From Hydrolagus colliei (lineage: Eukaryota), in NCBI GenBank assembly GCA_035084275.1, contig CM068769.1, positions 1,550,001 through 1,614,000 of the forward strand: a DNA stretch of 64,000 nucleotides, read 5' to 3'. The position numbers and the translations under genes are program-made. This document shows, in pieces, positions 1,141-44,344 of this stretch; within the stretch, counting starts at the first letter, position 1; every line of letters starts with the position of its first letter. The notes below the pieces were generated by a model, which saw only the letters and a program-made list of their open reading frames with translations, searched no databases and was not told the origin of the DNA.

Positions 1141-4100
1141 AGAAGGGGAGGTACAGGGGATGGCGATTTCCAAAGTATTGCAGAGACACCGGCAGACACA
1201 CAGAGGTACAGCTTGAGATACTGAGACAGACGGAAGCAGATCGGGAAAGACACACAGAACGCGTACTTAAGGAGCGAAAGTTACGCACATATAAATGAAT
1301 AGAGGGCGAGAGAGCCGCACACTGTCAGAGAGAGGGAGTTACAGCAGATAGTGCGAGACACATTTTGAAAGACAGCACCTCCCTCGGGACAGGATCAGAA
1401 TGGCTACCATGTTAGCTGCAGAGAGAGTGAAGGTAAAATGACCAGTTATAATAATCAATTTCTACAGTTCATTTTCTGCTGGTAAAGTAATATTTTCTGC
1501 TGCGCTTTCTGTTGGTTACTTTTCGCTTCTCTCGCATGAAGTCACTATTTTTGCGACATCAAAGTGCGATGGAGAGAAGTCTGGCTCGCTGCCCATCGCC
1601 AGGAGTCACATTCACACGCACATACAGAGGCAGAAAAAGATGCACAGACAGCGGGAAATGCACTGACATGAAGACAGGGAAAAAGAGCAAGAAACAAAGA
1701 TGGAACACACAGGACGATGTAGAGAAAAGTAAATTCAGGCAGAAATGCAGAAGTACAGTTTTCTGTATATCGGCAGAAAGATCTCTACCCGTTCTGAGGG
1801 ACAGAGACCGTCACAGACAAAGGGGGAATGGGAGATACAGAGATACAACTACACAGAGAGTTAAACACAGACACAATGTGTTTGGTACAGAGATACAGCG
1901 AGACAGATAGATGCACTCAGACTGACAGATAGAGGGTTATTCAAAGACGGAGGGAGAGAATCACTGATACAAAGAGAAATGCACAGAGACAGATTCAGAT
2001 AGATATATATGCACACAGGCAGCGAGAGCGACACATCGCCTAAATACACGTACACAAACATACAGATGAATTAGACAGATATGCACACAGACAGAGATAA
2101 AATTACATACAAGGTGAGAATGATTCACCGACAAATAGAGACAATTCCACACACAGGGTATGGTAGTAAATATTTGAAGCAGATGCAGATGTAGATCGAT
2201 ACATAGATAGACACACGCACGCAACTAGAGAAAGGGAACCGAGAGGGGGGGGGAGGGCAGAGAGAAACAGAGGAACAGCCAAGTGCAGAGAGATACACAA
2301 ATACAAAGAAGTACAGAATGAGACAGGGAGACAGATATAGGTCTTGTGGGTCAGTCTAGATGGAGACACATGTAAAAACGTTTCACCTGCACAGCAGTAA
2401 ACAAACCAAACTAAGACTTCCATGAATCTAAATTTTACATGTAAATCCCATAGATAGATTGTTGGAAAATAATGCAGAGAAAAGCTATCTCTACATATGC
2501 CTACTGATCTGTTTGTCCATGCGTAGCTCTTCCTCTCTCCCCCCCTCTCTCTCTCCACAGGCGGTGGTGTTCACGTCCGTATTTCAATATATAGCTCTAT
2601 TTCTGTATCACTGCAAATATCCCTCTCACTGCCTGTGGGCAATATGCTTTACTTGCATATTCTTATGGATGGGGATATCATTCCTCAACGACTCAAGCCC
2701 CCCATCTGACCAAACTAAATCTATATAAACAGTTATGTGTGGAGTAAAGAAACTTGCCTTATGTTTCCCACTACTTCATAATGAAACCCGGTCCTCCGGC
2801 TTGTCAGTTCAATGCTGCAGTAAGGGAGAGAGGAGAATACGGATAGCGGAAAGACAGCTCACAAGATACGTTGAGAAGAGGATTGATATCAATGGAAAGA
2901 GAGACAGACACACATACATAGAGAAATAGGTACTCACAGTCACATATAGAACGAGAGAGATAGACACAGATCAATAGATGAAGAGACAGCGAGATGTAAA
3001 CAGGTAAAAATGTTGACGTACAATGTGCAATAAACACTGACAGAGATGCTCTCTGACCGTGTTTATTGCACATTGTACGTCAAAATAGCACGCAGTTTGG
3101 GACAGTGCCGCAGGACTCTGTATCCTCACCAGCGTGGGGAGGGAGTAATTGGGAAGACCGTCCAACACAGTATTTGCATTGCCGAGCCGGAATGTAATGC
3201 AGACATGAATGAGTCTTTCAGCGGCTTTCAAGTGGTGCGTTATTGGCGGAGTCAGGCAATGTGGGTTAGACGAGGAAATTAAATGGGTGGCATTGCTTGG
3301 ATGTGATGCAGGCAAGACACATGAGTGTCGAACAAGACAACAATGTATCTGAGTGGCTTGATGAGGTCAAGTGAGCAACGATGGAGGTTGACACTGCCAG
3401 CGACGGATGCACCAAGACGCTGGCGAGAGCCAGTCAACAGTGAATGTATAGAAATAGCTAGAGAATAACAGAGGGATGAAGGGATGCACTGAGACAGCGA
3501 GAGTGCTAACCACGTAGAAAGAAACAGAGAGATAGACATGGAGAGAAATGGACACAAAGAGGCACAATTACATAGATATACAGAGAAAGAAAGAGAAAGA
3601 TGCAAACAAACAGAGATAATAATATTAATTCTTGCTTTTCAGGTAGCGCTTTTTGCGTCTTCCAGAAGTCTCAAAGTGCATCACAGAATAGAGTGAGTAT
3701 AACTGAATTGACTGTCTATTTGTGAGCGAAACGGAGCAAGTCAGTGTCACACAAGCAGTGATGGATTGAAATCAACAATTTTTGACAGGCATTATTAATA
3801 GGCTAGTAAAATAAGGAAACCTGCCCAAGAATTCACCCTAACCTGCCAGGAATTGAACACAGATCTCTTGCTATTAATCCAGTGCTCTAACCACTGAGCT
3901 ACGGTAGAAGGGGAGGTACAGTGGATGGCGATTTTCAAAGTTTTGCAGAGACAGCGGCAGACACACAGAGGCACAGCTTGAGATACTGAGACAGACGGAA
4001 GCAGATCGGGAAAGACACACACACAACGCGTACTTAAGGAGAAAAATTACGCACGTATAAATGAATAGAGGGCGAGAGAGCCGCACACTGTCAGACAGAG

Positions 4101-5999
4101 GGAGTTACAGACAGCGGAGGAAGAAAGTGCATGATATATGCAGACATACGGTGATACACGAGCAAAGAGACTGAGAGGTAAACACACAACAAGGGAATGA
4201 TACACACAGACACAGAGAAGAAATACATACCAACAGAGAGATTCACACACACAAAGTGAAAGCAACACACACTTTGTTTAGATGTGCAGAGATACAGATA
4301 CAACATTAGATACGTAGAAATATGTACACGCTGACGGTGCATCAGGGACAAACAGAAAGAGAGAAAAAGAGAAGCAGAGACGTGCTCTCAGAGAGTCAGA
4401 GTGCTACACACAGTGTGAGACAGGGGGTTAACGGGATAGCAAGAGATAAGCAGAGAAATTGAGAGAAAGGGATGGAGATATACATAAACAGCATGAGTAA
4501 AAATAACAGATTATATGTATGTAGCGCCTTTCGCACCGAGTAGCTAACACAGAGAGAGACAAATACAGAATCAGATCCAGCACACTGCGAGAAAAAGAAA
4601 CAGAGAGAGCGCGCAACAGCTATAGAAACTCAAACAGGTGTAAACCCAGCCACACAGGGAGAAAAAGTAAGACAAATGAGTAGGATACAGAAACAAAGGC
4701 ATTCAGATAGATTCAGAATCATGCACAGCCAGAGGGATCCGGAAAGTCACGGAGACACAAAGAGACAGAGAGAGCACAAATATACATGACAAGAATCCTG
4801 GTATTTTTAAGTAGCACTCTTCGAGTCTTGTAGGCTTCTCATGCGCTCGACCGAATCTACACTGACGTGAATTGACTGTAGATTTGTGCAGGAAATACAG
4901 CAGCCAATGGCGCATAAATTTGTTATCCATTGTAGTGATCAATGTGATATTATTTTTTATTTCTTCGGGGATTAATAACAGGTGTATGACGTAAGGTAAC
5001 TTGTAAGGATGCTATAACACTGCCAGGAAATGAACTTCAGTCTATCGACTCAACAAATTATTTCGCTCTTAATTTATCAATCAAACAATGAATCAAAACT
5101 TAAATCTACATAGCGTCGTTCACGTCGAAAGGACGTCCAAGGCGCTGTAGTGTCAGGAGTGGACTAGGGCAGTGGGGAGACGCCGTGGCAGGATGAAGAA
5201 GAGTAGGAAAATTGACTATATTTCTGGGATAAAAGCGGAAGATAGATTGCGCAGAGCAGTGTCGCACAATCAGCCATGGCAGTTGGGTCAGGGGAGAAAG
5301 CGAGGGAAAGATGGCAAGGGGAGGTGGCGGGGGAGTCAGGGTAGGGGGAAGGAGAGCAGGAAAGCCGACGTTTTGTGGGCGAAACCCCACCCCATCGCAG
5401 CAGACAAATTGTGCTCAGCAGCGTCCCACAAACGGTCACTGAAATTGGGACAGGGAGGGAATGTGGAAATGAGGGTATAGGGGGAGAGGGATGCAACGGG
5501 GCAGATTGAAGGGAAGATAGGGTGGGGTAAAGTAAGAGAGGAAGAGGGGGAAGCAACGAAGTTAAGTGGAAACTAAAACGGGTTAAAATACACAATTGCC
5601 TGATTCAGAGGGACAGTGGTAAACCGGTCGAGCTGCAAGCTTTAATGCATATTAAGAAAGAAATTAACTTTGGTAAAACACTTGCCGGGAAAACTAAATG
5701 CAGCGAGAATCGGGTGGTAAATGTCTTCTATTCTGTGAACAATCGGAGTTGTCATCTTCAAATCGGAAATTATTGCGTCTTCTCTCGGCAGAGGCAGCTG
5801 CTGACGGCTGAAAGATGATGCTAGAAAGTCTCAAACGGATTCTTATATAAATCAACAGTGATCGCTTTGTTGAGCAATGTTACCACGGGGTCGTCGATGA
5901 ATTTGAGCCGCATGCAAAACCTGTGTAATGTCATTTCCCTCAAGGATTTAATTTTTTTCGGGCAGCCCATTGTTTCATCATTGCTGAATCATTGTGAAG

Positions 6000-6322
6000 T
6001 CCCTTTAGCTCAGAGGTTAGAGCACTCGCCTTACAAGCGTGAAACATGTGTTCGAATCCAGGCAAGTCGAGGTGAAACCTTGAGTAAATGTCCTTGCTCC
6101 ACAAGGCTGAAATTAATCCTCCCAATAAAAACACAACAATAAAAATTGGTCTTGTCAACCCACGACTGTTTGTGGGGGGGACGCTGTTGTGCGCAATTAG
6201 CTGCCGCGTTTTGCCTATAAATATGCAGTCACTTCACTTTACAGTATATATTTCGAAGCACTTTGATATGTTGATAAGGTGGGAAACGCGGTACAGCAAA
6301 TGCAAGGTTTATTATTATTATC
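6000..6322 (+). mobile_element. Deu-domain tRNA-SINE, representative near-complete copy; >20 related copies or fragments in the window (e.g. 23483-23765+, 26990-27235+, 34195-34400+, 44550-44870+, 47055-47380+, 56020-56330+, 56500-56885-)
   Basis: Head TTAGCTCAGAGGTTAGAGCACTCGCCTTACAAGCG...GTTCGAATCC; core CTGTTGTGCGCAATTAGCTGCCGCGTTT resembling the DeuSINE central domain as I recall it; L2-like tail ...AAATGCAAG followed by (TTA)n. Confidence 0.8.
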
Positions 6323-7408
6323 ATCTCCAGTTACGCACTTACTTCCCCAGAGTGTAAATTAAAGCAACTTCGCTCCATAGCGACCAGCTCCCATCTTCAT
6401 TTATCACAGAGAGTGTGGAGAAGTGCATGGGAGGAACCAAGGTTTTGTTATCCCAGTGTGCGTCCTGAGGTTCCTGTTGAAATGTAACCAACCAAAGCTG
6501 AAATGCTTCTCACCGAAAATAATAATCCCTACATTTCCAACAAGACATACATACGTTCCACACATCTGGACATGAATTGCGGTATCAGCCACAAAGCTGT
6601 TTACCAAACTGAGTGATAGCACTCTCACCGGATAGTTGGAAGGTTTTGGGTTCAACAAGGACAACAGCAACAACTTCGGTTTTCTATTTTGCCATCCACG
6701 GCTTTACAGAGTCTCAGAGCGTTTCACAATAACGGAACACGGGGGGGCAAGCCAAGGGCAGGGGGGGAAAGGTGACCAAAGGCGCGTTGGAAGACAAAGG
6801 TGTTTATCTGAGACTGGAAACTGGGAAGAGAGGGGAAGAGGCGAGGGGAGTGAGGAAGGGAGTTACAGATCCTCGTGATGTACCGGGTGATGGTGCAGCG
6901 CAGCATTCGGGAGTAGAGGAGGAGACAAACATCCCTTCTTTTTGCTCCATGATTTGATGTACAGAGCTTGAGCAGCAATCTGTGTCCCTTAGCAGCAAAT
7001 CAACCCCAGCTTAGGCTTTGCTGTACAAACATATGTTCACAAACACCATTCCATGTTACACTCTCCAGCCGGTAACCAATGAATATCTGTCCTCATCGTG
7101 CTGGGAGCACCTTTGCAGCACCACCTGTGATTTGCCAGGGTTCCAGTTCAATGCCACAGATCGGTAGATCAAGTTCGTATTGGTTTACGCACAGTTAAAC
7201 AGACACGACCTCTTCGATGCTGAGAAAACACCAGTGCAGAATTGAACACACCCTTTCTGCAACCATTTCCTTTTATTTGAATAACTAAACGATCACTAAA
7301 TCACTAATTGGTTGACCCAATCTTTGCAAATGTGTTGAGAAGATCTCCCTGTTGCTCAGAACTTAATTTTATAAGACAGAGGTGGCATTAGTCTCAGATA
7401 AACACCTT

Positions 7409-8620: not shown

Positions 8621-8870
8621 CGAAGTTGTTGTTGTTGTTGTCAGAGAATCTGTGTGTGTGTGTGTGTGTGTCTGTGTGCAAGGACGTAGGTGTGTGACGT
8701 TGTGTATTTGCGATGTGACCATTTGTGTGTTTGGTGTTTATACATTTGTGTGACATGCTGTATGTCTATGTGAAAGAGAGTGTATGTTTCTGTGATCATG
8801 TGTGTGATTGTGCGTGTTTGCGTCCCTAAGGTTTGTTGTGCATGTGTGTGCATGTGCAAAAAGCTTTGTT

Positions 8871-9465
8871 GTCACCCAGTTGTACCTTTCTGCCTCATCC
8901 CTCAACCCCCAGACGATCGATGTTCTGACAGCATGTCTGTCCGACATCGAGTCGTGGACGAGGGACAACTTTTTGCAATTGAACGTGAATAAGACCGAGG
9001 CCCTACTGATTGGCTCAAGCCAGCGCCTCCGCACATCGGGCGCTGCTAGCCTCAATGTCCAAGGTTGCACTCTCCACCTCACAAAGCCAATCAGGAACCT
9101 CGGCATCATATTCGATCAAAAACTTTCCTTCCTCCCTCACATCCGCGCCTTGACCGGCACCGCCTATTTCCAGCTGCGCAACATTGACAGGCTCCGTAAT
9201 TATCTTACCCCCGCGCTGCCGAAACACTCGTGCATGCATACATCACCTCACGGATGGACTACGGAAATTCTCTCCTAGTCGGCCTCCCTTGTTTCTCCAT
9301 TCATAGGCTGCAGGCCATCCAAAACTCTGCAGCCAGTGTTCTATCCCGCACCCGCCTCCGCGACCACATAAACCCCACCCTCGCCCGGCTCCACTGGCTC
9401 CCCATCCTCCAGAGGATCGAGTTTAAAATCCTCGTCCTCACCTACAAGGCCTTACACGGCCTTGT
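8871..9465 (+). mobile_element. L2 LINE ORF2 C-terminal fragment
   Basis: WTRDNFLQLNVNKTEALLIG...IRNLGIIFDQKL and ITSRMDYGNSLLVGLP...WLPILQRIEFKIL, frameshifted. Confidence 0.9.
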
Positions 9466-10235
9466 AAAATAATAATAAAAAATCTTATTTATCAAAAGTA
9501 TAAAATGTAAGATTTATTAGTTTTAGTTTCACTCTGTCCTAACATGAACCACTCAATCACTACTTCTGCTTGTGGTTGGACATCAGACACGAGTTTCCTC
9601 TGAGACACAGCAGCAGAGTCAACAAATTGTCAAACAGGTCAACAGTCATTCCAGGCCTCTGAGCTGAAACTAAACTATTTCTCTCCTATTAGCAGGTTAT
9701 TGTAAAGTGGGGCAGGCTGACAGCAGGCTGATTCTAGCATGGCTTGTGTGATCGCATGGTTACAGTGGCTGTGTTCGATGCAGCCACAGTGGCAGTCAAT
9801 CACTTCAATGGACTTCCCGGCGTGAGAGGCGCTCTGCACACGTCATTGTGTTGTTGTTGATGTTGGGTTCGATACCAGGACAGTGCAACACATTGTGCAG
9901 CTATCCATACTCCACAGGCCTAAGTTTAAAATACATCTATTAGGAAACCTGTTCTATTACAATAGCGGTGAGCTATTCCTTGGGTATTTTTACTTTTATA
10001 AGAACGAAATATTACATTGCAACATTCGCATTATTTTCGAAGTCTTCATAAGAGTGGATTCCAAATACAGTGAGAACTGTGTTTGGAATACACACAGGGC
10101 GAATCCTTCGGCAAATTTCTTAATCCACACGCCCAATAATAATCCGTCCCATACCAAAAAATCTATCACCAATAATAAATCGGTCATTTACATCCATTAC
10201 TCTGTTTGGGGACGTTGCTGCGCGCAATTAGCTGC

Positions 10236-11008
10236 CGGACAACGGGCGCTGCCAGCCTCAATATCCAAGGCTGTACTCTCCACCGCACAAAGCCAGTCAG
10301 GAACCTCGGCATCACGTTCGACCAAAAATTCTCCTTCCTCCCCCACATCCGTGCCTTGACCGGCGTCGCTTACTTCCACCTGCGCAACATTGAAAGGTTC
10401 CGCGATTATTTCACCCCCCACGCTGCCGAAACACTCGTGCACGGATACATCACCTCAAGACTGGACTACGGAAACTCTCTCCTCGTCGGCCAACCCAGCT
10501 CCTCCATTCACAGGCTGCAGGTCATCCAAAACTCTGCAGCCAGTGTAATATCCCGCACCCGCCTCCGCGACCATATAACCCCCACCCTCGCCCGTCTCTA
10601 CTGGCTCCCCATCCTCCAGAGGATCGAGTTCAACATCCTCGTCTTCACCTTCAAGGCCTTACATGACCTTGCCCCGCAGTATTTAAACGAATTATTCTCC
10701 CCCTACAAGCCCACCCGCACTCTCCGTTCAGCAGGACTTGGCTTGCTCCAAGCCCCCCTGCCGAACCTCCCCACCATCGGAGGCCGGGCCTTCAGTTTTT
10801 CTGCTCCGACCCTATGGAATTCCATCCCCCAATCCCTCCGTCTCGTTTCTTCCCTTTCCTCTTTCAAGGACGGTTTGAAGACTTTCCTCTTCGACCGTGC
10901 CTTTTGTTCCACCCCGAATTCTTCGACCTCCCCTACTTGTTTCACCCCTTCCCGTACACTCTCCTCCCTGTTCGTGTTACACGCCTCCTTTGAAGCGCCT
11001 TGGGACGT
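10236..11008 (+). mobile_element. L2 LINE 3' fragment nested inside a Deu-SINE
   Basis: ORF 10206-11012 encodes ITSRLDYGNSLL...HWLP-type...GGRAFSFSAPTLWNSIP. The SINE core (...GCGCAATTAGCTGCCG) ends at ~10235 and the SINE continuation (ATACACAGTCAAATCAC...AATGCAAG) resumes at ~11010. Confidence 0.85.
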
Positions 11009-11104
11009 ATAATACACAGTCAAATCACTTGACAATGTATTCTGTGAAGCGCTTTGAATCGCTTAGAGTAGACGTCAAAAGCGATATAGCGAATGCAAGT
11101 ATTA

Positions 11105-12835
11105 ACAACAACAACAACAACATCAATTTACATTTAAAGAGCGCCTTTCACGTTGGGAGGACGTCCCAAGGCGCTACAGTTTTTGATCGCACATGATGCC
11201 GAGGTTCCTGATTGGCTTTGTGAGGTGGAGAGTGCAACCTTGGATATTGAGGCTGGCAGAGCCCGATGTGCGCAGGAGCTGGCTTGAGCCAATCATGAGG
11301 GCCTCGGTCGTATTCACGTTCAATTGCAAAAAGTTGTCCCTCGTCCACGACTCGATGTCGGACAGATATGCGGTCAGAACATCGATCGTCTGGGAGTTGA
11401 GGGTTGAGGCAGAAAGGCACAGATGGGTGTCGTCGGCATACATGTGGAAATTTACCCCATGTCTGCGGATAACGTCACCCAGAGGGAGCGTGAAAAGCGT
11501 GAAAAGGAGGGGACCGACGACAGAGGCCTGAGGGACGCCGTGGGAAACAGTGCGGGGGTTTGAAGAAAAACCATTGGAAGAAACAAAATGTAAACGGTGG
11601 TTCAAATAAGAATGGAACCAGTCAAGTACTGTGCCTTGAAGGTTGAGGTGGGAGGAAAGACGTTGAAGGAGGATGGTGTGATCGACTGTGTCGAACGCAG
11701 CAGACAGGTCACGGAGGACGAGGAGGCAGAGGGAGCCCTGATCACAGGCGGTTAGGATGTCATTTGTGACCTTAACCAGGGTAGTTTCTGTGCTGTGGAT
11801 AGGGCCAAACCCTGATTGGAGGGGTTCAAGTAGTGAGTGATTTGAAAGGAAAGAGCGGGGCTGGGATGCAACCAATCTTTCAAGGACCTTGGATAGAAAC
11901 GGGAGGTTGGAGATGGGTCGATAACTTGATGGTTGCGACGCATCAAGGGAGGGTTTCTTCAGGATAGGGGTGATGGTGGCTGTTTTAAGGGAGGTAGGGA
12001 CGGTGCCTGAGGATAGGGCAAGGGTAATGGTGTCAGAAATGAGCGGGGCTAACAAATGGAGCTGAGTGCGTAGGAGGGGAGTGGGGATGGGTTCCAGTGA
12101 ACACGTGGTTGGATTCATGGAGGTGATTGTTTTTGTGACTGAAAGCGGGGTGGTGGTGTTGAAAGTGTGAAGTGGGGGGTGAGTACGGGTTGAGGTGGCT
12201 GATGAGGGCGCGGAGGTGGAGGAGTGGTGGGTGGAGGAAACCGCAGAGCGGATTTTCTCAATTTTGGACTCGAGGAAATGCAGCATCTCCTCACAACGAA
12301 CGTTTGAGGAGAGGATCTGCGAGGTGAGGCGAGTGGGGGGGGGGGGGGGGGGGGGGGGGGAGCTTGTTGGTGGTGGCGAAGAGGAGGCGGTGGTTGTCCT
12401 TCGCTTCCAGGATTATCCTGGAATAGAAGGCTGATTTGGCGGTGGCTAGGGCGGAGCGGTAAAATTTGATGCGGTCCAGCCAGATTTGCTGGTGGACCTT
12501 GAGGCCAGATTTGAGCCAGGTGCGTTCAACTGCTCTCACTTGGCTTTTGAGGGAAAGTAGGTGAGTTGTGTACCACGGTGATGATCGAGAATGCGAGACG
12601 GTTTTGGAGGTGAGGGGGGCCAGGGTGTCGAGGGTAGTGGAGAGGGTGTTGTGCAGGGCGGTGGAGGCGGAGGATGGGTCTGTACAAAAAGAATGCCACT
12701 GTGGGAAGAGGTCGGAGGTTTCTAGGGCAGAGGTGAAAGTTTGAACGGGAATCTTCTTCCAGGGCCGGTAGAAGATGGTGGTGGGTTTGGAAGTGGAATA
12801 ATAATCGCTGATTATTATCATTACTGTTGTTATTA
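11105..12835 (-). mobile_element. L2 LINE with reverse transcriptase domain; ORF2 C-terminus deleted
   Basis: ORF 11174-12286 has YRPISNLPFLSKVLE, DLSAAFDTVDH, GVPQASVVGPLLF and YADDT. After DQKL the sequence jumps straight to the L2 tail and (GTT)n. Confidence 0.93.
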
Positions 12836-13038
12836 TCCACATGTCTTAGTTCTAACAAACAATCTTCTATCGGTTGATTAATCAACACATAAAATACAGA
12901 GCTAGTGATGCATTTCTTTTTCTTTAATTGACTTGATATGAAGTAACTAAAGTGTAAGCTGTGGGGACAGTTAGCTGATGGTTTGTTAGATAGTGTCTCA
13001 CTGCTCTTTACTGATTCCAAGCGTTTGGTTGTGATGAG

Positions 13039-13077
13039 GGTTATTGTACGAGGCTTCCTATGATGTGGATCACTGTG
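13039..13077 (-). other. 23-RSS of the supporting TCR V
   Basis: Minus strand CACAGTG (13077-13071), 23-bp spacer, ACAATAACC (13047-13039). Confidence 0.93.
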
Positions 13078-13311
13078 GTGCAGACTGACTACGCAGTGAT
13101 ACATAGCGGAGTCTGGTAGCTGCAGGCTGCCGATGGTTAAATGGCTAAATTGTTTTGGCAGTGTCAAGAGAAGCAGAACTATGATCTCTAGTGGGGTTTC
13201 CTCGCTCTGCTGAAAGGCGTCTGTGGAGAAGGTATATCGGTGCCTCACCAGGGAACTGACAATACCAGGAGACAATGAGATTCTGTCCACAGAATCCTGA
13301 GTATTGGCATT
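13078..13311 (-). pseudogene. TCR V segment resembling the leaderless supporting V-delta of NAR-TCR; frameshifted, FR1 not visible
   Basis: Reads CQYSGFCGQNLIVSWYCQFPGEAPIYLLH...SLDTAKTI, then a +1 shift (~13147), then SHLTIGSLQLPDSAMYHCVVSL. It has an extra Cys in CDR1, a 23-RSS, and lies directly downstream of the NAR-like V-D-J. Confidence 0.85.
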
Positions 13312-13315
13312 TCCT

Positions 13316-13584
13316 CCCGTGTTTGCTCCCGTGTTTGCTCCCGTGATTCCTCCCGTGTTTCTTTCCGTGTTTCTTTCCGTGTGTCTTTCCTTGTTTCTTT
13401 CCTTGTTTCTTTCCTTGTTTCTTTCCTTGTTTCTTTCCTTGTTTCTTTCCTTGTTTCTTTCCTTGTTTCTTTCCTTGTTTCTTTCTTTCTTTCTTTCTTT
13501 CGTTCTTTCGTTCTTTCTTTCGTTCTTTCGTTCTTTCGGTCTTTCGTTCTTTCTTTTTATCTTTCGTTCTTTCTTTTTATCTTT
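13316..13584. repeat. Graded 12-bp/4-bp pyrimidine-rich micro/minisatellite abutting Cys23 of the supporting V
   Basis: Units drift from CCCGTGTTTGCT to TCCTTGTTTCTT to (CTTT)/(CGTT) before running into the gap. Confidence 0.9.
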
Positions 13585-13911
13585 NNNNNNNNNNNNNNNN
13601 NNNNNNNNNNNNNNNNNNNNNNNNNNNNNNNNNNNNNNNNNNNNNNNNNNNNNNNNNNNNNNNNNNNNNNNNNNNNNNNNNNNNNNNNNNNNNNNNNNNN
13701 NNNNNNNNNNNNNNNNNNNNNNNNNNNNNNNNNNNNCNNNNNNNNNNNNNNNNNNNNNNNNNNNNNNNNNNNNNNNNNNNNNNNNNNNNNNNNNNNNNNN
13801 NNNNNNNNNNNNNNNNNNNNNNNNNNNNNNNNNNNNNNNNNNNNNNNNNNNNNNNNNNNNNNNNNNNNNNNNNNNNNNNNNNNNNNNNNNNNNNNNNNNN
13901 NNNNNNNNNNN
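13585..13911. other. Assembly gap (N run)
   Basis: N characters, with one isolated c. Confidence 1.
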
Positions 13912-14576
13912 TCCAATCTATCACTCCCACTTTCCCCTTCATCTCTCTCTAATTTACCTTAGATGCTTCCTACACGTGTACTTGCTTACATTTTGGCAAA
14001 ATACCGTGTTTTCGTATGAATGAATAGTTAGTTGCTTGTTTCCGTAGAATATGATATAGTTCAGTTGGAACAGTCAACTTCCATACAGAGGGGAAATTGG
14101 TGAACATTTCAAGTTATCGACCTCGCTTCAGACAAGCCTTGGTTTGAATAGAACAATTTAAAGCATGTTTCATAATGGAGACATTTCATTGAGAGTTGAA
14201 TTCTCGATGGAATCGAGGCAGGGAGTGTATATAATATGCCACTGGAACTCACATATCCTGTGTCAATCATTTGTCTGAATTTACAGTTAAATTATGTGTC
14301 TCGGCATATTCCTTTGTAAACCATCTCCAGAAAAAGTGCAATGGCATAAAACCAAAAATGGAGTAGATGTAGTTCATCAAAGGAAAAAGCCTCTTAGCGG
14401 GAACTGTCTATTCTTTTAAAGTCACAAGCATATCTTTTATTTTTCAAAATAAGGTTAAGGGGAATGTTGGCCTGACACATTTGAAAATAACTAGGCAATT
14501 TGTGAAAATTAAGCAGTGCATTTTAGAAATTCAAGTAACCAATGTTTCGTTTTATTTCGGTAGAATTTATTCTCAC

Positions 14577-14634
14577 TTTCTTTTTGTTACTGTGACTTTG
14601 GTTCCTGACCCATCTTATGTAAATTCCTTCCAGG
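14577..14634 (-). pseudogene. NAR-TCR-type J segment (defective)
   Basis: TGG AAG GAA TTT ACA TAA GAT GGG TCA GGA ACC AAA GTC ACA GTA ACA = WKEFT*DGSGTKVTVT. Donor GTGAGA at 14576-14571 falls in phase 2 as written. Putative RSS on the plus strand: GACAGAG (14635-41), 23 bp, GCGCAAACT (14665-73), with the CAC broken. Confidence 0.8.
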
Positions 14635-14990
14635 GACAGAGTAACACAGCTCTCGTAATACAAGGCGCAAACTATATTCTATCTGATTATGATTGAATAC
14701 TGCCACGAAGTAAAAATAAATGATAACAAGTTAGTTGTTAGTTTCTACATTTCTACCAATTTGTCATCACAATACACGCATCGTGTCCAAATTTGGTTTA
14801 ATTTCAATGTAATTTCCACCGATCACGAACAAATTGCCTCGCCCAGAAAACATATATCAATAAATAATTCTAGAATTATCTGCTTCAAATGGCTAATTCA
14901 GAAAGCAAACTTCTGACAAATACAGCGCAAGAAAACATGGCACAGCAATTAGTGTTCATGTGCAATGTAATTCCATATAAACAGCCGCAC

Positions 14991-15063
14991 GCTATTTGTG
15001 CTGATGGATTCCAATGTGGCTTTCCAAATAGACAGCACCGTATTTGCTGTCAACACAAATATA
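14991..15063 (-). other. D segment (15019-15035, CTGTCTATTTGGAAAGC) flanked by two 12-RSS
   Basis: 3' RSS on the minus strand: CACATTG, 12 bp, ACAAATAGC (15018-14991). 5' RSS read on the plus strand: CACCGTA, 12 bp, ACAAATATA (15036-15063). It sits between the NAR-like V and the J. Confidence 0.75.
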
Positions 15064-15388
15064 GTATTTTGCAAAAACAGTGTAACACTATCTGGTCAAG
15101 TACAATTTACCAATAAATAATATCACGTGTACAAATATTTTGAAGATATTCCTATTCAGATTTGATATGTCGTCTATTAGATATACATAAACTGCGATAT
15201 ATGCCAATTGCACTCACATTCAACGTCTTTTAACACTACCTACATTTTCCTAAGTGTTCACCAGTAATGCTTGTTAGTCGAAGAGAGTGCTAGTAAACAC
15301 CATTCACAACTCAACACAATGGAAAATGTGCATTGAATTCATTGATAAAGTCACATTGACTGTGTGTTGTCTTTGAAATGACGAAGAG

Positions 15389-15426
15389 GCTTTTTGTATT
15401 GTTGGAAGCCTAGATGCAGCATTGTG
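15389..15426 (-). other. 22-bp-spacer (23-class) RSS of the NAR-like V
   Basis: Minus strand CACAATG, 22 bp, ACAAAAAGC. Confidence 0.85.
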
Positions 15427-16132
15427 TTGTCCCACAGATATTGAGATGTATATATGTAGGTAGCGCTGTCTGCTACTTGCAAATCATTAATTTCCAGCGT
15501 GGATGTGTTTGTTCCCACTTTGATAACATCAAACCGTCTTTCGCGAGGGATGGACATCCAATCTCCTCCATTTGGAAACTGCCTTTGAAATGCCAAGCTA
15601 ATGGAGCTGTAGTACCCACGATTCCCTTCTGCAAAGACGCAGTTGATGGTCAAAGAATCACATTCTTCTTTGGTAATAGAAGTTAGTGTCTGTGTTAGGG
15701 TCTGACTGAAAACATCTGAAACATACACAACCTGACATCAGGTTAATACAGGCAGAACCCTGACCTATACCATTAGCAGCAAATCCTGATGCTTGGCATG
15801 AGTTGAATTGATTTCAATTAATACAATTATGATATAATTATACTATCATGTTTAATTAATAAAACACAAGCAGAACAGATGAATCGATAGCAATCGGCTG
15901 CTTCTTTTCGCCCGCAAAATAAAAAACAGTACGGTCAGTTCGTCATGCTATATACACTGTGAAGCGCTTTAAGACGTTTCATCGATGTGACAAGCCTCTG
16001 TATCAAAGCAAGCAATAATGTAAATTATTGTAAGGCATAAGGGTAACGATGGTTTTAACTCGTGCCGTGTAATTGGAACAAAAACTCACGTTGTAAGAAG
16101 TGGAAGGCGATGGAGACAGAGATGAGATGCAT
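15427..16132 (-). pseudogene. IgNAR-related V of a NAR-TCR cassette: leader exon 16132-16090, V exon 15715-15427; open frame but Cys104 lost
   Basis: Leader MHLISVSIAFHFLQ with GTGAGT donor (43 nt, phase 1); acceptor TTTCAG. V reads (H)VFSQTLTQTLTSITKEECDSLTINCVFAEGNRGYYSSISLAFQRQFPNGGDWMSIPRERRFDVIKVGTNTSTLEINDLQVADSATYIYTSQYLWD. VNAR-like features are ITKE..SLTINC, a short CDR2-less middle and LEINDL; there is an extra FR1 Cys. No canonical Trp, and YxC reads YIY. Confidence 0.88.
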
Positions 16133-19694: not shown

Positions 19695-20048
19695 AGTTTC
19701 TGTTCCAGCCCTGTAGTGTAATCAACCACTGTGGTGAGACTGAAGGCACGGTGATACACTGCGCACTCAGATACCAGCAGCTCAGTGATGGAAAAACTGG
19801 TGAAAGAACTAGATTCCTGCAGCTGAGCAGCGAAACGTTTTCCAAATCCTGTTCGTTTCACTAGATCGCCATCACCAGAATATATCTCCTGACTGTAAAC
19901 TCTGGGTGTTTGTCTGGGTATTGTCTGTACCAGAAGAGACAGTAATTGCTTGCAGTAGTGGTGTAGGTACACACAATATTGACAGCTTCTCCTTCTTTCG
20001 TAACCACCGTGGCAGATTTCTGACTGACATAATCAGCGTCACAGAATT
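19695..20048 (-). pseudogene. TCR alpha/delta V pseudogene, family A (V exon 20048-19734; 23-RSS 19733-19695)
   Basis: (E)FCDADYVSQK...VCTYTTTASNYCLFWYRQYPDKHPEFTVRRY, 2-nt frameshift near 19880, then SGDGDLVKRTGFGKRF...SECAVYHRAFSL (Cys104 is Arg). RSS CACAGTG, 23 bp, ACAGAAACT. No convincing leader found. Confidence 0.92.
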
Positions 20049-26256: not shown

Positions 26257-26603
26257 TGTTTTTGTACGAGTCTCAGGCTGGTTCGCATCATTGTGTGGAC
26301 AGAGAGCACAGTAATACACAGCGCTGTCAGACAGTTCCAGCTGGGAGATAGTTAAACTGCTGAGTTTTGTCGTGGTCTGGAGTTCCATAGAGAATCTTTT
26401 ATCAATCAAATCTGCTCTGTATGCACTCCCACTGGAATGCTTCATGAGTATATACTGAGGTTGATTTCCCAACAGTTCTCGATACCATTGCAAATAATAG
26501 CTGCTGAGAGATGTTTCCTACTGACATTCCATGGTTACACTTTCTCCTTCTTTCTCGGTCACTGGAGCCGCCTTCTGTGTCACAGAGTCCCCTTGGGCCA
26601 GGC
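26257..26603 (-). pseudogene. TCR alpha/delta V with a single nonsense codon (V exon 26603-26296; 23-RSS 26295-26257)
   Basis: (G)LAQGDSVTQKAAPVTEKEGESVTMECQ*ETSLSSYYLQWYRELLG...LTISQLELSDSAVYYCALC. RSS CACAATG, 23 bp, ACAAAAACA. Only a frameshifted leader-like stretch is seen (~27319-27352). Confidence 0.92.
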
Positions 26604-43388: not shown

Positions 43389-44344
43389 AGTTGTTGTACG
43401 AGCAATCTGCCCTTCTGTAACAGTGTGGGCTCCACGGCACAGAGATACACGGCGGTGTCACTCACAACCATCCTGAGAATCTGCAAGTTAATTAGTTTCT
43501 TCCCCTTGTTCACCTCGGCAGTGAAACGGTCAGCAATTCCAACAGCTTTGTCTACCTTTCCCGAGGCATATATCTTGAGGAAATACTGAAGAGCTCCATC
43601 GGGATATTGCCTGTAGCAGAAGATAGTGTCTATTCTTGAAACGTTCATTCTTATTGTCACGTTTTGTCCTTCAAGTTCTGTTATCTCAGGGTGGGTTTGG
43701 TATATGACACCACTCCCATTGGCAACTGGAAAAACAATACATGTCTAATTAAAAATATGAGTTAAAATTCTCTTTGCTATGTATATTATGGAGAGCTTTT
43801 ACACGTCTAAAATGTCTATATGAAACGCAAGAGTTGCTGTTATTACTGTAACTTTGCTGGGGAACGGTAAACGATCACTAGTGTTTTGGTGCTGATAGAT
43901 TTTCTGTCTGTGTTTGTAAATGTTGGAACTGCTTATACTTGCGAAGTTGTTCCATTCAACTTTTGAACTTGATTTTCTGTAGCTCGTGAAATAAATCATT
44001 AAAAGCTACTTCCAAATTGAAAATACACATGTCTTGGGGTTGTGTGTTTGCATTACCTCGTCTTGTCGCCGTCTCCAATCGCTTCAACGATGTGAAGCGA
44101 ATTTAACGTATGTTCTGTTGGAGGAAACTTGGCATTCAACTGTGGGTAGCCGTATCCCAAAGTCATTCGTGGATTGATCGATCAAACTAATATTATGTAA
44201 AAACTCTTTTTAGAAAGCGATTCATTAATTAAATAACAACAACGAAAACATTAAACCCATGTGCGCAGCATGCATTGGTCATGTCCAAACATACTTACTG
44301 TTTAGAGTGAGAATTACTATCAGTAACTGCCAGTGGGCTCCCAT
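43389..44344 (-). CDS. Atypical V ORF: Cys23 replaced by Met, Trp41 replaced by Cys (leader 44344-44299; V exon 43725-43428; 23-RSS 43427-43389)
   Basis: MGAHWQLLIVILTLN/IANGSGVIYQTHPEITELEGQNVTIRMNVSRIDTIFCYRQYPDG...SDTAVYLCAVEP. RSS CACACTG, 23 bp, ACAACAACT. Confidence 0.85.

Follow-up and report, generated by a model that had tools for sequence, protein, structure and literature searches.

Organization of the locus

A stretch of 64,000 nucleotides from the genome of Hydrolagus colliei (NCBI GenBank assembly GCA_035084275.1, contig CM068769.1, positions 1,550,001 to 1,614,000 of the forward strand), hereafter referred to as the window, carries on its minus strand the parts of a NAR-TcR cassette, a T cell receptor (TCR) delta element of cartilaginous fish. 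In the direction of transcription, these parts are a leader exon, a NAR-type variable (V) exon followed by a recombination signal sequence (RSS) with a 22-nt spacer, a 17-nt diversity (D) segment between two RSSs with 12-nt spacers (12-RSSs), a joining (J) segment with a splice donor, and, beyond an interval that contains an assembly gap, a second V of the TCR-delta type with a 23-RSS of its own, which we will call the supporting V (Table 1). All of them had been listed in an earlier note made from the letters alone, and each is present on the minus strand where that note had placed it. Its description of the cassette as complete was nevertheless too strong, as the supporting V lacks framework region 1 (FR1) and a splice acceptor in the sequenced part.

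In an intact NAR-TcR, RAG joins the NAR V, with its 22- or 23-RSS, to a D flanked by a 12-RSS on both sides, and the D to a J with a 23-RSS. A leaderless supporting V-delta with a 23-RSS rearranges separately with D-delta, J-delta and C-delta, the constant (C) region. The transcript begins at the NAR leader, and the donor of the NAR J is spliced to an acceptor that lies at the FR1 of the supporting V. This yields a delta chain of three domains with an unpaired NAR domain on top, in which a cysteine in the a-b loop of the NAR V and a cysteine in complementarity-determining region 1 (CDR1) of the supporting V have been proposed to link both V domains.

Searches of the window by tblastn with NAR-TcR proteins of chimaeras and sharks matched the NAR V, the J and the supporting V at the places given in Table 1. 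Exactly one NAR V and a single supporting-type V were found within the 64 kb.

Table 1. Features of the NAR-TcR cassette and its surroundings, with the corresponding spans in other species (positions are those of the window unless another locus is named; defects are numbered)
Feature	Position	Strand	Description
Leader exon of the NAR-TcR V	16132-16090	minus	43 nt; MHLISVSIAFHFLQ plus 1 nt; donor GTGAGT at 16089
Leader intron	16089-15716	minus	374 nt; acceptor 15716/15715, phase 1, V frame kept
NAR-TcR V exon	15715-15427	minus	open frame; (H)VFSQTLTQTLTSITKEECDSLTINCVFAEGN..AFQRQ..DSATYIYTSQYLWD
Defect 1, NAR V Cys104 to Tyr	15452-15450		TAT
NAR V RSS	15426-15389	minus	CACAATG (15426-15420), 22-nt spacer, ACAAAAAGC (15397-15389)
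D and flanking 12-RSSs	15063-14991	minus	D CTGTCTATTTGGAAAGC at 15035-15019, 17 nt; 5' TATATTTGT-12-TACGGTG; 3' CACATTG-12-ACAAATAGC
J RSS, decayed 23-RSS	14673-14635	minus	nonamer AGTTTGCGC (14673-14665); CTCTGTC in the place of the heptamer
Defect 3, J heptamer			CTCTGTC, essential CAC lost
NAR-TcR J	~14634-14577	minus	..EFT*DGSGTKVTVTKRK; donor GTGAGA from 14576 (GT 14576-14575)
Defect 2, in-frame TAA in J	14617-14615		removal needs ~20 nt of trimming
Interval between J and supporting V	14576-13310	minus	unique 14576-13912 (~660 nt), gap 13585-13911, compound microsatellite 13584-13310
Supporting TCR-delta V, 5'-truncated	13309-13078	minus	CQYSGFCGQNLIVSWYCQFPGEAPIYLLHRRLSAERGNPTRDHSSASLDTAKTI, +1 frameshift near 13150-13147, SHLTIGSLQLPDSAMYHCVVSL
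Defect 4, FR1 and acceptor of supporting V			replaced by microsatellite
Defect 5, WYRQ Arg to Cys (WYCQ)	13261-13259		TGT
Defect 6, +1 frameshift in FR3 of supporting V	near 13150-13147		extra T
Supporting V RSS	13077-13039	minus	CACAGTG-23-ACAATAACC
V-to-D-to-J span, window	15427-14612	minus
V-to-D-to-J span, Chiloscyllium plagiosum (L001)	6481-7295
V-to-D-to-J span, shark L003	3489-4281
V-to-D-to-J span, Mustelus asterias (L004)	2480-3285
V-to-D-to-J span, shark L005	15730-16522
V-to-D span only, Pristis pectinata (L002)	5440-5846
Heptamers of ordinary array Vs	56925, 54888, 52038, 48555, 46662, 41874, 39102, 26295, 21642, 19733	minus	same strand as the cassette
LINE reverse-transcriptase open reading frames	11174-12286, 12291-12842	minus	370 aa and 183 aa; remains adjoining the cassette
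Related LINE reverse-transcriptase fragments	8808-9278, 10206-11012	plus	remains downstream of the cassette

The first V exon belongs to the NAR-TcR family

When the NAR V exon was compared with all chains in the PDB, the best 29 matches were shark VNARs, with E values from 3e-8 to 5e-4 and about 35-40% identity, while immunoglobulin (Ig) light chains and TCR chains appeared only above an E value of 2e-3. An exhaustive HMMER search, which covered 1.8 billion representatives, gave 22 proteins. The matches examined were gene models in which a NAR-type V is followed by a V-delta and, in some, also by a C region; they came from Callorhinchus milii, Cetorhinus, Heterodontus, Pristis, Chiloscyllium and Mustelus. 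The closest were all from Callorhinchus, at no more than 50-52% identity. The exhaustive search was needed, a word-index protein search with the same query having yielded zero candidates, and the V-set match obtained with Pfam, at 17 bits, stayed below the cut-off of 26 and cannot type the domain.

In a maximum-likelihood tree, the NAR V of the window falls inside the NAR clade (support 98/93), beside the NAR-TcR Vs of Callorhinchus. It is not part of the IgNAR clade (98/97), and the ordinary Vs of the window are distant from it. The exon at 15.4-15.7 kb thus does not group with ordinary TCR V or Ig heavy-chain V, in agreement with its earlier assignment.

Three traits have been described as diagnostic of NAR-TcR V: a leader of its own, a cysteine in the a-b loop and a WYRK motif that lacks its tryptophan (PMC1845163). 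All three are found here, in the form of the leader exon, the sequence KEECDSLTINC and AFQRQ in the place of WYRK; the leader MHLISVSIAFHFLQ, moreover, resembles the leader MSLLGVSISFLFLQ of the Callorhinchus protein P0006. The missing tryptophan is therefore not a sign of decay, its absence being a published hallmark of the family (PMC1845163). The exon is nonetheless damaged at another invariant position. Cys23 is present, while the second canonical cysteine (Cys104) is a tyrosine, a change that argues against function but not against descent from a NAR-TcR V.

D and J segments

Both D heptamers retain CAC at the coding end. The D with its RSSs aligns in register with the D of the bamboo shark at 54% identity, compared with 37-38% in the flanking spacers, which rules out a chance set of RSS-like motifs. 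Similarly, the J RSS and J are 57% identical to those of the bamboo shark, against the same 37-38% in the spacers between segments. As regards the 12/23 scheme, the RSSs of V and D are both in place, in register with their shark counterparts, and the J keeps its nonamer and spacing without a CAC.

The earlier description of the J as bearing the remnant of a 23-spaced RSS is accurate in this sense: the nonamer and the 23-nt spacing are kept, and the heptamer has decayed. The element aligns with AGTTATTGT-23-CACTGTG of the bamboo shark; at 21-24 nt from the nonamer there is no heptamer with a coding-proximal CAC, the sequence at 23 nt being CTCTGTC. An alternative heptamer, AGCTGTG at a 13-nt spacing, was considered and rejected, as it breaks the 12/23 rule with the D and is misaligned with the shark heptamer.

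The J itself (DGSGTKVTVTKRK plus donor) is 76% identical to residues 94-114 of Callorhinchus P0006 (tblastn). This protein reads ..ADGSPTKVTVTKRK followed immediately by SYTVSQSPPEQ.., that is, a NAR J (TKRK) spliced directly onto a supporting V. The window segment is accordingly a J of the NAR-TcR type (DGxGT..VTV) that ends in a splice donor, GTGAGA. The DGxGT motif is found in four of the five intact cassettes compared below, the sawfish J having YGAGT instead.

The in-frame TAA of the J lies one codon 5' of the DG motif. The sequence ACATAAGAT just 5' of the motif (window 14620-14612) also occurs in the sawfish J (L002, approximately 6250-6262), where a different frame is used (..I H K I Y G A G..), so that the TAA of the window may stem from a small indel rather than from point changes.

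The supporting V and the assembly gap

The supporting V reads CQYSGFCGQNLIVSWYCQFPGEAPIYLLHRR..SASLDTAKTI and, after the frameshift, SHLTIGSLQLPDSAMYHCVVSL. It is 70-73% identical, in two frames, to the supporting V of the Callorhinchus protein P0001 (tblastn), and in the tree it joins the supporting V-deltas of Callorhinchus (98/94). The two frames were fused at the frameshift solely to build the tree and were kept as separate pieces in the searches. In PDB searches with a piece of the supporting V and with one ordinary array V, multi-domain single-chain variable fragments prevailed; these searches left TCR and Ig V unseparated and were not used as evidence. A cysteine in CDR1 marks supporting V-deltas (PMC1845163), and it is kept in the window copy (CQYSGFCGQ). 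The proposal that the downstream V is a supporting V-delta is thus upheld by its grouping as well as by this residue.

The sequenced part of this V starts directly at the Cys23 codon (13309). The compound microsatellite of 275 nt at 13584-13310 runs into this codon on one side and into the gap on the other. Since it abuts Cys23, the sequenced part contains neither FR1 nor the splice acceptor, and since at least 275 nt of sequenced simple repeat stand between the gap and Cys23, the gap cannot restore a continuous V exon. In line with this, tblastn with homologues that include FR1 found neither a leader nor an FR1 in the sequenced part between the J and the supporting V, and the earlier statement that no leader is visible there holds.

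The gap at 13585-13911, between the J donor and the supporting V, has purine-rich low-complexity sequence on both flanks, which is probably the reason for the break in the assembly, and none of the exons in Table 1 extends across it. A lone called G at 13737, between runs of N at 13585-13736 and 13738-13911, probably arose when the sequence was masked or the gap was written.

Comparison with intact cassettes

The layout was compared with that of five intact loci, namely Chiloscyllium plagiosum (L001), the sawfish Pristis pectinata (L002), Mustelus asterias (L004) and two further sharks (L003 and L005). All five have a V with a 22- or 23-nt RSS spacer, a 23-RSS before the J and an intron of 1.9-2.8 kb between the J and the supporting V. 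The spacer of the V RSS is 22 nt long in four of these five cassettes, and hence in five of six loci when the window is included, indicating that this length is normal for NAR-TcR V. The four shark loci (L001 and L003-L005) have a D of 16-17 nt between two 12-RSSs, with a 3' nonamer,.CAAATA.C, similar to that of the window. In each of them, a script located the acceptor immediately at the FR1 of a supporting V that has a 23-RSS and no leader; for the sawfish, the D was recognized on its 3' side only, and the acceptor at FR1 was read by eye. Taken together, the V family and its hallmarks, the J, the supporting V and the layout of these five cassettes support the view that the window holds a doubly rearranging cassette of the NAR-TcR type.

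The distances between the segments are close to constant. From the end of the V to the end of the D there are 397-409 nt in the intact cassettes and 408 nt in the window, and from the end of the D to the DG motif 393-406 nt in the four sharks and 405 nt in the window. Yet the DNA that separates the segments shows background similarity only (37-38%), and the divergence spanned exceeds 400 million years. It is conceivable, although we would not favor it, that the V-D-J geometry of NAR cassettes is constrained and that the spacing matters for ordered joining by RAG, in which case it would have outlasted coding function in Hydrolagus. Alternatively, indels may simply be rare in slowly evolving genomes.

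State of the cassette

Six defects can be read directly from the sequence. Two are substitutions of invariant residues, one in each V; the others are the stop codon in the J, the lost J heptamer, the microsatellite that has taken the place of FR1 and the acceptor, and the frameshift in FR3 of the supporting V. The RSSs of the NAR V, the D and the supporting V still look usable. In combination, the six defects make a pseudogene the best reading, and the earlier characterization of the cassette as fossilised is borne out. We conclude that this is, with high probability, a germline NAR-TcR cassette of the holocephalan TCR alpha/delta locus that has become a pseudogene. As far as can be judged from its sequence, the copy would formerly have worked in the NAR-TcR manner outlined above and would then have decayed to a point at which it could no longer yield a protein.

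A number of points weigh against this conclusion. The assembly is of draft quality, with six N gaps in the window. The +1 frameshift, located in a TTT run, may be an error, and trimming during joining might in principle remove the TAA of the J. The contigs on either side of the gap are joined by scaffolding only, which leaves the adjacency of J and supporting V unproven. Finally, no C-delta, D-delta or J-delta was seen by tblastn in the window, which ends 13 kb downstream of the cassette.

It is unlikely, in our estimation, that the cassette is functional and owes its lesions to errors of draft assembly or sequencing, with FR1 and the acceptor of the supporting V hidden in the gap. The open frame of the NAR V, the intact splice sites and the good RSSs, including a near-consensus RSS at the supporting V, are what such a cassette would display, the frameshift lies in a homopolymer run, and the assembly has many gaps. 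Errors of this sort would, however, have to account for six independent defects of different kinds, that is, two substitutions of invariant residues, a stop, a heptamer, a frameshift and a microsatellite. Moreover, the last of these occupies at least 275 nt exactly where FR1 should meet Cys23, and it is sequenced rather than inferred.

Less likely still is a scaffolding artefact, in which the leader-V-D-J part and the truncated V come from different places, for instance from two cassettes, and were joined across the gap. The join is indeed an N gap with low-complexity flanks, and the distance from J to supporting V, about 1.2-1.3 kb, is shorter than the 1.9-2.8 kb of other species. On the other hand, the order, strand and type of both halves are exactly those of a cassette, and the 64 kb contain one NAR V and one supporting-type V. 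Even if the artefact were real, both halves would remain parts of NAR-TcR.

That the V-D-J part is the remnant of an IgNAR-type cluster lying beside an unrelated ordinary V-delta pseudogene is barely credible: its V is VNAR-like by sequence and its spacing of about 400 nt resembles that of cartilaginous-fish Ig clusters, but the V bears the NAR-TcR hallmarks and lies outside the IgNAR clade, there is one D and not three, and a J matching those of NAR-TcR leads not to C exons but to a supporting-type V that has the CDR1 cysteine. A survey of the elephant shark, furthermore, found no IgNAR (PMC1845163).

Surroundings of the cassette

Upstream of the cassette, at 57200-19700 on the minus strand, lie at least 12 ordinary V segments, TCR alpha/delta in type, which belong to several subfamilies and most of which have leader exons and 23-RSSs. 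In a protein search, an ordinary V of this array reached at best 70% identity to proteins of Callorhinchus milii. Some members seem to be dead: two frames are needed to read the V ending at 19733, and the one that ends at 26295 is interrupted by an in-frame stop (ECQ*ETS). Two further V-like exons, ending near 43430 and 34806, are without a canonical heptamer.

The cassette had been placed at the 3' end of this array, and within the window this is true, no further V, D or J and no C-delta being present between 12.8 and 1 kb. This downstream part contains debris of LINE reverse transcriptase instead, beginning about 200 nt past the supporting V RSS. In Mustelus asterias, a gene model of about 27 kb (L004 2001-28672) takes in the NAR cassette together with the supporting V and C-delta. 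The cassette of that species is therefore close to the D-J-C end of its locus, which fits the position of the Hydrolagus cassette at the downstream end of a V array.

Implications for the annotation and evolution of NAR-TcR

The cassette is probably an unannotated, dead member of the known NAR-TcR family. With it, a family known before from chimaeras and sharks gains one pseudogene cassette, and our knowledge of the NAR-TcR mechanism is left unchanged. It also provides a small data point on the birth-and-death turnover of such cassettes at the downstream end of a V array. The near-constant spacing of V, D and J is the one point that deserves a further look.

Its use for annotation is more immediate, as D, J and leader segments are invisible to gene finders and existing gene models of the family are chimeric. 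In P0001 (XP_007909367.1, Callorhinchus milii), for example, an ordinary V has been fused with two NAR Vs and with supporting Vs. The model continues through an RSS (..LHHSDTHHRKPRTITLITTK), and 19 of 20 residues of this stretch are identical to the read-through of the RSS flank of the window. Automatic annotation of the NAR-TcR family is unreliable.

Comparison with known systems

NAR-TcR was described in the nurse shark in 2006 by Criscitiello, Saltis and Flajnik, as cited in PMC1845163 and PMC12227049. NAR-TcR genes of the elephant shark were reported by Venkatesh et al. 2007 (PMC1845163), and the system is also covered in PMC5931798, PMC3457774 and PMC6795676. The Hydrolagus cassette has in common with it a leader and a NAR V with the a-b cysteine and without the WYRK tryptophan, a D and J of its own, a J donor instead of a C exon, a downstream supporting V-delta with the CDR1 cysteine and a 23-RSS, and the RSS spacer scheme and V-D-J distances of five elasmobranchs. 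It differs in that the copy has decayed, its J heptamer included, and that the window does not show a link to D-delta, J-delta and C-delta.

With the IgNAR clusters of elasmobranchs, the source of VNAR, the cassette shares the V domain family. Three Ds, constant exons after the J and a WYRK tryptophan, the traits by which an IgNAR cluster is recognized, are all absent from the cassette; it has one D in contrast to three, a cysteine in the a-b loop, a J that leads to a V and not to constant exons, and a V that stands apart from the IgNAR clade.

TCR mu of marsupials and monotremes likewise gives a three-domain product, its unpaired N-terminal V being carried by a supporting V (PMC3457774), and is an analogue in function only. 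The resemblance is regarded as convergent; TCR mu is confined to mammals, has a C region of its own and carries V domains related to VH (PMC3457774).

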